Origin: Salpingoeca rosetta
Taxonomy: Eukaryota; Protista; Choanoflagellata
Assembly: GCA_033442325.1 (NCBI GenBank)
Contig: JAWQFM010000013.1
Coordinates: 210,069-274,068 of the forward strand
Direction: 5' to 3'
Length of the DNA stretch: 64,000 nt
In this document: piece after piece, positions 49,452 through 51,978 of the stretch
Layout of the letters: every line of letters begins with the position of its first letter
Numbering within the stretch: the first letter of the stretch is position 1
Notes under the pieces: model-generated
The model's input: only the letters and a program-made list of their open reading frames with translations
Database searches by the model: none
Told to the model about the DNA's origin: nothing
Made by a program: the position numbers and the translations under genes

Positions 49452-49793
49452 ATGTTCCTGTGCCGAACGACGTCTGTGAAGGAGAGAAAGGGCGAGGCTG
49501 CCGAAGACTCGGCTGCCAGCGGCGGCCTGCCGTTCAACCCGCTGTACATGAACGAGCAAGAGTACGAGGTGGTGCAGGCGGAGATCAAAGCGCTGCTTGA
49601 GGACGCGCGCGCGGCAGAGCCCCAGATCACGGAGGCGCTGCAAGACGTCGCGGAGAAGCACGGCGCCCGCCTGGCAGGGCTCGACCACCGCACCAAGGAA
49701 TACGAGAGCTTGCTGCGCAAGGGCATCTCCTACGTCGAGTGGAACCGGGAGCAGCTGGCAAGCGGCAGTGACACAAGTGCCAAGGACAAAACG

Positions 49794-49847
<54 letters not shown>

Positions 49848-51116
49848 CAACAACAACAACAGAACGATGGCGATGGCGATGGCGATGCGGATGATGACAG
49901 CGGTGGCCCAGCATCCATTCACGACATCGTTCGCGACATTGGCGACAGCGTGCGGTACACGATGGTGCCCAAGTTTGAGGAGTACGTGTCGACGGTGAAG
50001 CACACGGTGGAGACGCTCAAGGAGCTGGGCATCGTGGTGCTGCGCAGCCGCAACTATTGGGGCGATGGGGACCACTACCAGGGCCTGAACATGACACTGA
50101 AGCACCCGACCGCAGGCGTGATGTTTGAGCTGCAGTTCCACACGGAGCAGGGCCTGAAGATCAAGAAGGAGTGCCACAAGCTGTACAAGAAGTACCGTGT
50201 GGAGAAGTCGCCCTTCAAGAAGAAGCGCTACTTTGATGCGGGCTGCAAGCTGGCAAACAAGGTCAAAGTGCCCGAGGGCGCGCTTGAGCTGGACACGATC
50301 GTGGAGACGGCCCCGCCAGACCCCGTGGAGCTGCTGGCCGACGACCTGCGCGTGACCAGCTTGCTCCTGCGCGAGACAATTGACAGCATCCTCGGCCCGC
50401 TCATTGCCGACATGCAGCCATCGGCACAGGGCAGCAGCGGCGGCGGCAGTGGCGATGGTGGTGGAGATGGTACTGGTGAGGAGCAAACGGCAACAGAGGA
50501 GGCGGAGGAGAGCAAGGGCGAGGGACAGGGACAGGACAAGGGAAGCCAGCGAAAGCAGAAGAAGAAGAAGACAAAAGGAAAGAAGCGGGCTGGAACCGGT
50601 GGCCGTGGCGGCGCTGCTGCGCAGAGCGAAGTGGCAACCAAGCAGCGGCTGATGGCGGAGATTACCGAGCACATGGAGAATGCCAAGTCGAAGAACGTGC
50701 GCGACGGGTCCAAGGCTGTGACCGATGTGCTGCGCTACCACGTGGTGGTGCCTGCGGACGAGTACGTGCCTGCTGTCGACCGCGTGTTGAAAGGGCTGGA
50801 GGGGGAGCGGCAGGTGACGGCGCGGCCCATCCAGAACTTCTGGCAGCACGGCGACGCGTATCAGGGGCTGCATGCGCCGTTTGTGTTTGTTGACAAGCGC
50901 GCAGGCACCGTTCCGTTTGAGATTCGCTTCCACACGCCGGAGACGTGGGCGCTGCTTCGTGGGCGCATGGCCGCATTCCTGGCCTCCCTCGACGCCCTCC
51001 CCGCACACGACCGCAAGCAAAAGTACCAGGTGTGTTGTCTGTGTCGATGTGTGTGTGTGTGTGTGTGTCTGTGTGTCTGTGCGTGTGTGTGTCTGTGTGT
51101 GTGTGTGTGTGTGTCG

Positions 51117-51155
<39 letters not shown>

Positions 51156-51582
51156 GTCGATATGTGTGTGTGNNNNNNNNNNNNNNNNNNNNNNNNNNNN
51201 NNNNNNNNNNNNNNNNNNNNNNNNNNNNNNNNNNNNNNNNNNNNNNNNNNNNNNNNNNNNNNNNNNNNNNNNCTCTATGCTCGCACGTGTGTGTTCTCTT
51301 CATCCCCCCCCTAGTCGTGAGAGTCTTTTTCATTTTCGCTTCAAGGTGTTGTGTTGTGTTGTGTTAACTCTGTCTCCGCTCGCCACACATCCACACACAT
51401 CCACACACATCTCGCACACATCCACACATTCCACACACATCCGCACATATCCTCCCCTATCTCATGTTTTGTGTACAGTCATGCTTGCGGAATGGGAGAA
51501 GCTGCCTATGCCTGAGGGCGTGCTGGAACTCAAGTCGAAGAGGCTGCAGGTTGACCTGGGCGAGCTGGTCCAAGACGTTTAG
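49452..51582 (+). CDS. RelA/SpoT-homologue small alarmone synthetase (toxin-SAS/Apk-like) domain plus degenerate tandem copy; exons about 49452-51033 and 51479-51582
   Basis: Copy 1: LAGLDHRTKEYESLLRK (RxKxxxSxxxK), DIGDSVRYT, RNYWGDGDHYQGLN, FELQFHT, HKLYKKYR, KVKVPEGALEL. Copy 2: TDVLRYH, QNFWQHGDAYQGLH, FEIRFHT, KLPMPEGVLEL. Confidence 0.88.
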
Positions 51583-51614
51583 TAGTCTCGAGTGTGCTGT
51601 GTGTGTGTGTGGGT

Positions 51615-51659
<45 letters not shown>

Positions 51660-51978
51660 CTGTGTGCTGTATGTTCGTCGCTGTGTGTCGGTGTCTGTGT
51701 CTGTGTATGTCGGTGTCTGTGTACTGTATGTTCGTCGCTGTGTGTCTGTGTGTGTGTGTGTGTCAATCTGTCCGTCTGTCCGTCGCTCTGTGTGTATATG
51801 ATTGTCTGTCTGTCCGTTGTCCTCTCTGGCTCCCTCTTTGCCGCTCTGTTTTGTCGTGTTGACCACGGATGTCTTGCGACGTGTGAGCTGTCTGTTGCTG
51901 TGCCCCTTTGCCTCCTTGCCTTCCTTGCCGTTTATGTATGTGAGCCATGTGCTGCCACAGGCTCTTGCTTCCGTCCAT

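Follow-up and report, generated by a model that had tools for sequence, protein, structure and literature searches.

A choanoflagellate gene that pairs an intact small alarmone synthetase-type domain with a degenerate second copy

The DNA analysed here is a stretch of 64,000 nucleotides from the choanoflagellate Salpingoeca rosetta (GenBank assembly GCA_033442325.1, contig JAWQFM010000013.1, positions 210,069 to 274,068 of the forward strand), referred to below as the window, whose own numbering is used for the positions in it. A gene on its plus strand that starts at 49452 is predicted to encode a protein of about 560 residues with two successive domains related to the SYNTH domain of RelA/SpoT homologue (RSH) synthetases. 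The interpretation that appears probable, while leaving appreciable room for others, is that this is a native choanoflagellate gene belonging to a eukaryote-wide group, in which domain 1 would be an active-type nucleotide pyrophosphokinase and domain 2 a degenerate module. The protein belongs to a catalytic family that is known, but in a two-domain and eukaryote-wide form that is undescribed.

Judged by its residues, domain 1 is a complete small alarmone synthetase of the Apk1/Tas1-SaEAS branch, in which all known ATP-Mg-binding and catalytic residues are kept. Its features are the following, the equivalent residues being those of SaEAS from Streptomyces albidoflavus (PDB 8VX3; Ahmad et al., mBio 2025, PMC12691689), whose roles are taken from that paper.

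49554 to 50300, plus strand: domain 1 (residues ~35 to 283), a SYNTH domain of the Apk1/Tas1/SaEAS type with intact catalytic residues
49689 to 49721, plus strand: RxKxxxSxxxK (R80, K82, S86, K90), the basic ATP-phosphate-binding motif, with K82, S86 and K90 near-invariant in alignment A1
49737 to 49916, plus strand: low-complexity insertion (residues ~96 to 155), polyglutamine (CAG/CAA repeat) and Asp/Gly-rich, separating the first motif from the remaining part of domain 1
49944 to 49961, plus strand: D165-x-x-R168-Y-T, with D165 equivalent to the catalytic D121 and R168 to R124, both invariant in A1
50052 to 50090, plus strand: N201-x-W203 followed by Y209-x-G211-x-N213, with N213 equivalent to N169
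50127 to 50144, plus strand: E226-L-Q228-F-H230-T231, with E226 and Q228 equivalent to E182 and Q184

All of the RSH motifs that had been listed in an earlier, sequence-only reading of the window do lie in one frame from the ATG at 49452: LAGLDHRTKEYESLLRK begins at 49671 (L74) and DIGDSVRYT at 49935 (D162), RNYWGDGDHYQGLN occupies approximately 50049 to 50090, FELQFHT lies at 50124 to 50144, and HKLYKKYR begins at 50175. The full ordered set comprises R80, K82, S86, K90, D165, R168, Y209, G211, N213, E226, Q228, H230 and H242. The structure 8VX3 is that of the D121A mutant, and in the residue alignment its alanine falls opposite D165; R198 corresponds to SaEAS K154. Domain 1 has the commonest 20-residue motif string of the family (100 of 243 domains), which, if K for R at the first position is counted, recurs in 26 of the 31 rows of the eukaryotic domain-1 group, the rest being fragments or slight variants. 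With regard to the insertion, the CAG/CAA repeat codes for about 28 glutamines, and all short-read contigs break at 49785 to 49899.

The family assignment points in the same direction. SaEAS is the nearest solved relative, followed by Tas1; a phmmer search of the PDB finds 8VX3 at E=2e-14, and the family profile covers the entire chain of 8VX3 at E=2.4e-36. The MuF-fused, Apk2-like protein P0002 is 40% identical, and phrog_7625 of PHROGs, a group of MuF 'head morphogenesis' proteins that end in a toxin domain, is matched at E=1.9e-20. Among the NCBIfam models, the Rel-like C-terminal region of XopAD/Skwp (NF041399, model positions 2001 to 2130 of 2133) is matched at E=8.8e-34 and 116 bits. An AlphaFold2 model of the exon-1 protein, built from a 30-sequence alignment, has a mean predicted local distance difference test (pLDDT) score of 77.8, mostly 87 to 98 in the domains, with disorder at residues 1 to 23, 137 to 150 and 327 to 388; with this model, Foldseek retrieves only RSH synthetases at E<=0.001, and the fold is the alpha/beta nucleotidyltransferase-type SYNTH fold common to RelP, RelQ, Rel and Tas1. 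The earlier assignment to the toxin-type synthetases (Tas1/Apk1, MuF-Apk2), and not to long RelA/SpoT, is thus borne out. The profile check suggested alongside it, with the Pfam model RelA_SpoT (PF04607), drew a blank: the model matches neither domain at E<=10 and nothing across the genome at E<=1. Nor do the other Pfam models give a meaningful match to the protein. In the ESM Atlas, generic bacterial 'RelA/SpoT domain-containing' clusters are found, with PF04607 in 17% of the members of one cluster and no common Pfam family in the top three. The PF04607 model does not reach the domain-1 subfamily, and since it detects neither domain the gene seems to have been overlooked so far.

The gene structure was read from the window together with Logan contigs of four public runs (X1, X11, X14 and X19) placed on 49200 to 51700. 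The first in-frame ATG is at 49452, and the frame is free of stop codons up to 51029, at which a GT-rich stretch starts; a second exon, at about 51478 to 51582, completes the predicted protein.

49452 to 51029, plus strand: exon 1, 526 codons for domain 1, an insertion-rich linker and most of domain 2, as read from the open reading frame and the sequence
51030 to 51477, plus strand: spliceosomal intron, GT-rich past the donor and CA-rich ahead of the acceptor, with the junction uncertain by about 1 nucleotide
51173 to 51272: assembly gap of 100 N, inside the intron
51478 to 51582, plus strand: exon 2, the last 34 codons of domain 2 (V-MLAEWEKLPMPEG...), with the stop codon TAG at 51580 to 51582

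Exon 1, the CAG repeat excepted, is covered by contigs from all four runs. In X14 and X19, which are RNA-like and come from different studies, a single contig spans 49900 to 51030 and then 51480 to 51585 with one letter between, while in the DNA-like X1 and X11 the contigs end at 51034 and the exons are never joined. The spliced product is in frame (...KYQ-V-MLAEWEKLPMPEG...), and exon 2 can be aligned gap-free with the C-terminal end of P0003, the orthologue from Hartaetosiga. The intron is real, since the RNA-like contigs skip it and the DNA-like contigs stop at 51034, and the gene is spliced and transcribed, X14 and X19 being taken as RNA from the spliced contig itself. The expression and splicing that the sequence-only reading had wished to see confirmed, and the spliceosomal intron that it had proposed, are found in two runs from two studies. 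Right of the gap, 6 of 106 letters mismatch the RNA-like contigs, including G>A at 51542 (Arg to Lys), and 51412 to 51600 lacks coverage by contigs of the DNA runs at >=95% identity; the 1-nucleotide ambiguity of the junction is attributed to assembly quality near the gap. In a transcript of Salpingoeca infusionum (P0001), the sequence past ...EKLYQ-V turns into unrelated Cys/Leu-rich sequence exactly at the intron site of the window gene, which would fit the retention of an intron whose position is conserved.

The explanation of the segment as contamination from bacteria or phages, as an assembly error or as a transfer of very recent date that was dead on arrival is effectively refuted. It draws on the overwhelmingly bacterial or phage-borne nature of the family, on the assembly gap within the gene and on the mismatches to its right. 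Against this, the intron is removed in frame in two runs, and an exon of Nckap1, a eukaryote-only gene, is recognised by Pfam upstream on the same strand at approximately 43360 to 43480 (29.4 bits, for a cut-off of 27). Furthermore, the G+C content at third codon positions is host-like (0.80, as compared with 0.74 in the Mesh1 exon of the same genome), the stretch is present in 20 runs from 7 studies, and orthologues with the same architecture occur in the transcriptomes of two other choanoflagellates, Salpingoeca infusionum and Hartaetosiga gracilis. The gene occupies a single locus in the 55.4 Mb and 68 contigs searched. It is a native, expressed, two-exon choanoflagellate gene and, as had been supposed from the letters alone, not a simple contaminant in a choanoflagellate genome.

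An exhaustive HMMER search retrieved 2680 representative clusters at E<=1e-3, and the top matches are eukaryotic: Hartaetosiga gracilis, Salpingoeca infusionum, the amoebozoan Phalansterium solitarium, the dinoflagellate Polykrikos kofoidii and MMETSP transcripts. Phalansterium has the same pair of active and degenerate domains, and the Polykrikos and MMETSP transcripts contain relatives of domain 1. A two-domain member of 526 residues is also encoded at 8001 to 9581 of a 645-kb ENA contig (L004), next to SRP72, SIR2, EamA and a tRNA synthetase; this contig is compact and apparently intron-poor, and is probably part of a picoeukaryote genome from a metagenome. In 18 homologues (for instance P0013, P0025, P0035, P0038, P0042, P0061, P0075 and P0158) the protein starts with MG in a myristoylation-like context, MGxxxS or MG(G/C/S)xxS, which suggests N-myristoylation, sometimes with palmitoylation, and a putative membrane anchoring of these relatives, many of which are eukaryotic. 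No such MG start is present in the window protein or in the Hartaetosiga protein. The bacterial relatives include giant proteins with WXG100-like annotation and several tandem copies, such as one from Nocardia. In the giant bacterial proteins P0022, P0086, P0034 and P0059, two to six tandem domain copies are found, intact and degenerate ones mixed, so that the mixture of active and pseudo copies exists in bacteria too.

In the trees, whose deep branches are weak and which have no known root, domain 1 of the window protein groups with the choanoflagellate sequences (support 97 and 96), and this bears out the orthologues in other choanoflagellates for which the sequence-only reading had suggested a search. 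The 31 rows of the eukaryotic domain-1 group hold together with a support of 98 in FastTree and of only 80 in IQ-TREE, with five unnamed rows inside. The eukaryotic domain-2 copies form a separate group (support 88 to 89), and the subgroupings of the two domains mirror one another, which argues that the two-domain unit is older than the eukaryotic spread of the family. The pair may have arisen by duplication within eukaryotes or may have been inherited from a two-copy bacterial protein. The ultimate origin of the gene appears to be bacterial; a recent transfer specific to choanoflagellates was considered and rejected, given the eukaryote-wide group and the mirrored, co-evolved domains. The conservation of an active and a degenerate copy in tandem across distant protists suggests a bacterial warfare enzyme that was domesticated once and widely kept, a scenario with parallels in other toxin and immune modules of bacteria that eukaryotes have put to new use. 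When the Phalansterium protein P0025 served as the query, no Dictyostelium or other named eukaryote was retrieved, a blank that says nothing on animal homologues or on a link to divRel.

Domain 2 extends over residues ~287 to 560 and keeps the SYNTH fold.

50310 to 51029, plus strand: the exon-1 part of domain 2 (residues ~287 to 526), with a degenerate SYNTH-like fold
50430 to 50615, plus strand: disordered Gly/Glu/Lys-rich insertion (residues 327 to 388, pLDDT <50), between the first helix of domain 2 and the remainder

The domain retains D425, R428, Y429, N462, W464, Y470, G472, E490 and H494. The Asn of YxGxN is replaced by H474 and the Gln of ExQ by R492, and RxKxxxSxxxK is missing, its expected site being occupied by the disordered insertion of about 60 residues. 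A hidden Markov model of domain 1 scores domain 2 at 76 bits, as compared with 252 bits for domain 1. In other eukaryotic members, domain 2 has often lost the Asp and the Glu as well, and these losses, together with those in the window protein, make it best read as a pseudo-enzyme. Its most likely role would be a structural or regulatory one without catalysis, in which it keeps in check, or in place, an enzyme with the potential to drain ATP. A complex prediction of domain 1 (residues 30 to 325) with domain 2 (389 to 526) reached a score of 0.79, the best control being 0.00, with a contact agreement of at least 78% and a partner pLDDT of at least 76, a mark that 51 of 78 solved complexes attain, as do 2 of 108 mismatched pairs. 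The predicted interface consists of the helix 291 to 325 on the domain-2 sheet, and according to VIA domain 2 begins near residue 287. As proof that domain 2 regulates domain 1 this prediction was rejected, because the cut at 325 had split the fold of domain 2 itself.

In comparison with the systems already described, SaEAS is a single-domain protein that is Sec-secreted and works outside the cell, whereas the window protein is eukaryotic, lacks a signal peptide, carries a polyglutamine/acidic insertion and has a degenerate second SYNTH domain fused to the first. It shares with the Apk1-like/EAS family of Ahmad et al. (2025) the sequence similarity and the ATP-site residues, but not the export. 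The (p)ppApp synthetase toxin Apk1/Tas1 of the Pseudomonas aeruginosa type VI secretion system (PDB 6OX6) and the prophage MuF-Apk2 are C-terminal toxin domains with PAAR/Rhs or MuF delivery and adjacent immunity genes; conversely, the window gene has neither delivery modules nor an immunity gene. The type III effectors XopAD/Skwp of Xanthomonas and Ralstonia (NF041399) typically have two domain copies, as the window protein does (Zhang et al. 2012, PMC3482391). They exceed 2000 residues and contain SKWP repeats, whereas the window protein has no repeats, reaches its 116 bits against a cut-off of 2000 and matches only the C-terminal 130 positions of the model. Precedents for SYNTH domains in non-plastid eukaryotic proteins are divRel of Dictyostelium, Aspergillus, Gibberella and diatoms (Atkinson et al. 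2011, PMC3153485) and, for fused ones, the RelA_SpoT effector domains of fungal NLR proteins (Dyrka et al. 2014, PMC4986451), both of which are ascribed to bacterial transfer in the accessible parts of these papers. As described there, both were found with RSH or Pfam RelA_SpoT models, which are blind to the window protein, and the accessible descriptions, by which they are set apart from it here, mention neither a tandem of active and degenerate domains nor myristoylation-like N-termini (PMC3153485, PMC4986451).

The killing of bacterial prey, one of the uses that had been imagined for the protein from its letters, appears unlikely. No export feature was found: the N-terminus MFLCRTTSVKERKGE is non-hydrophobic and followed by a helix, and searches of Pfam and NCBIfam return no secretion-system recognition domain of the WXG/LXG, XopAD, MuF, PAAR/Rhs or DUF4157 kind. 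A secreted prey-killing toxin was accordingly rejected, in view of the missing signal peptide and of the cytosolic acylation motifs (N-myristoylation motifs) of many relatives. Nor does the gene resemble the toxin-antitoxin and anti-phage systems of the toxic small alarmone synthetases (toxSAS) CapRel, FaRel and PhRel, as there is no operon context and the fused C-terminal domain is itself a SYNTH copy; PADLOC reports no defence family, its best match (E=0.02) being to an unrelated model. The other uses proposed in the sequence-only reading, in defence, dormancy or signalling, are putative.

With regard to function, the most likely reaction of domain 1 would be a pyrophosphate transfer, in which the beta and gamma phosphates of ATP are passed on to the 3'-OH of a purine nucleotide to yield (p)ppApp, (p)ppGpp or both. 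All characterised Apk1-like members make nucleotide alarmones, Apk1 and Apk2 producing (p)ppApp, SaEAS both kinds, and VpEAS and AaEAS (p)ppGpp (PMC12691689). As these enzymes differ in their product, the acceptor here, which is not readable from the sequence, may be A or G. That domain 1 is instead a pyrophosphokinase of the tRNA 3'-CCA end, as are the translation-targeting toxSAS CapRel, FaRel2 and PhRel2, is the main mechanistic rival and seems quite unlikely; no diffusible alarmone would then be made, and the effect would be an arrest of translation, with the protein serving, for example, as an antiviral or cell-death effector within its own cell.

If domain 1 does produce a nucleotide alarmone, an obvious candidate for the hydrolase of that product is present in the same genome. 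An exon of a Mesh1 orthologue lies at G000:C3:1104608-1104838 (L003:1303-1740, minus strand) and is the sole HD_4 match above the Pfam cut-off in the genome; with Drosophila Mesh1 (3NQW) it gives a match at E=2.2e-33, and for the two entries of human MESH1 the values are E=4.2e-32 (3NR1) and E=4.1e-31 (5VXA). The unrestrained enzyme would be expected to be toxic and hence to need gating, for which domain 2, the insertions or, in relatives, membrane anchoring are candidates. The broader proposal that choanoflagellates and many protists possess a genuine endogenous alarmone synthetase, supplying (p)ppGpp, (p)ppApp or both and regulated by membrane or condition, with the fused pseudo-synthetase as its regulator and Mesh1 as its hydrolase, is a tentative one, for which doubt somewhat outweighs confidence.

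Several points weigh against an active nucleotide pyrophosphokinase in a native gene. Catalysis by any eukaryotic member is predicted only, from the residues, and the bacterial relatives are extremely fast and toxic, so that by analogy an unregulated form would be hard for a eukaryotic cell to bear. As the PF04607 model misses both the protein and the genome, the link to canonical RSH enzymes leans on structure and on the bridge through SaEAS and Tas1. The regulatory role of domain 2 is an inference, and the complex prediction that passed its mark only rejoined one fold cut in two. The RNA nature of the runs X14 and X19 is a guess drawn from the spliced contig, and the splice junction, beside the assembly gap, is non-canonical in the letters of the window, 1 nucleotide off GT...AG. 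In addition, metazoan Mesh1 has been proposed, in the accessible part of one study, to act on NADPH (PMC9765508), for which reason the pairing of synthetase and Mesh1 may be coincidental.

The predicted status of catalysis and the connection of metazoan Mesh1, in the same part of that study, to NADPH and not to ppGpp (PMC9765508) also speak for a different view, in which the protein is catalytically silent or repurposed as a nucleotide sensor or scaffold, or uses another acceptor (of the NAD(P) type or another 3'-OH), its motifs being kept for binding. Domain 2 illustrates that the fold can outlast catalysis. However, in lineages that lie very far apart, most eukaryotic copies of domain 1 preserve the catalytic set in full, with the Asp and Glu that bind Mg, and domain 2 decays freely while domain 1 does not, which is the pattern expected of purifying selection on catalysis. 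A silent or repurposed protein is thus considered unlikely, though of some weight, and the reading of domain 1 as an active-type nucleotide pyrophosphokinase is preferred.

Animals retain Mesh1, a (p)ppGpp hydrolase. The presence of ppGpp has been reported in human cells. It has also been reported in Drosophila (PMC7666150, PMC13681480). In the accessible part of the survey of Atkinson et al. (2011), Mesh1 is the only such protein reported for a choanoflagellate, and no synthetase is known in animals (PMC3153485). The word 'eukaryot' is absent from the text of the 2025 survey of Apk1-like/EAS proteins, and its supplements contain none of the eukaryote names searched for (PMC12691689). A full-text literature search combining choanoflagellate or Salpingoeca with alarmone or ppGpp returned no description of the gene. 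A catalytically intact synthetase-type gene, to which standard Pfam and RSH models are blind, and Mesh1 share a genome in a close unicellular relative of animals. Should the proposed function be correct, animal Mesh1 would be the surviving half of a synthetase/hydrolase circuit, for second-messenger signalling or cell death, in the unicellular ancestors of animals. As Salpingoeca rosetta is genetically tractable, the existence and purpose of alarmone synthesis in holozoans would be directly testable.

With regard to the surroundings of the gene, the sequence-only reading had named both NCKAP1 and an RRM gene as eukaryotic neighbours, of which the former is upheld by the Pfam match given above and the latter is not, the RRM-like open reading frame of 61 residues having no Pfam match at E<=1e-3. 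The contig of X14 and X19 that covers 49200 to 49784 is about 4.5 kb long and reaches about 3.9 kb past 49200, despite long genomic (GT)n tracts there. This suggests a spliced neighbour transcript that overlaps the 5' end of the gene, perhaps that of Nckap1 or of the RRM-like minus-strand gene at 48522 to 48707, or else a long, multi-exon 5' untranslated region.

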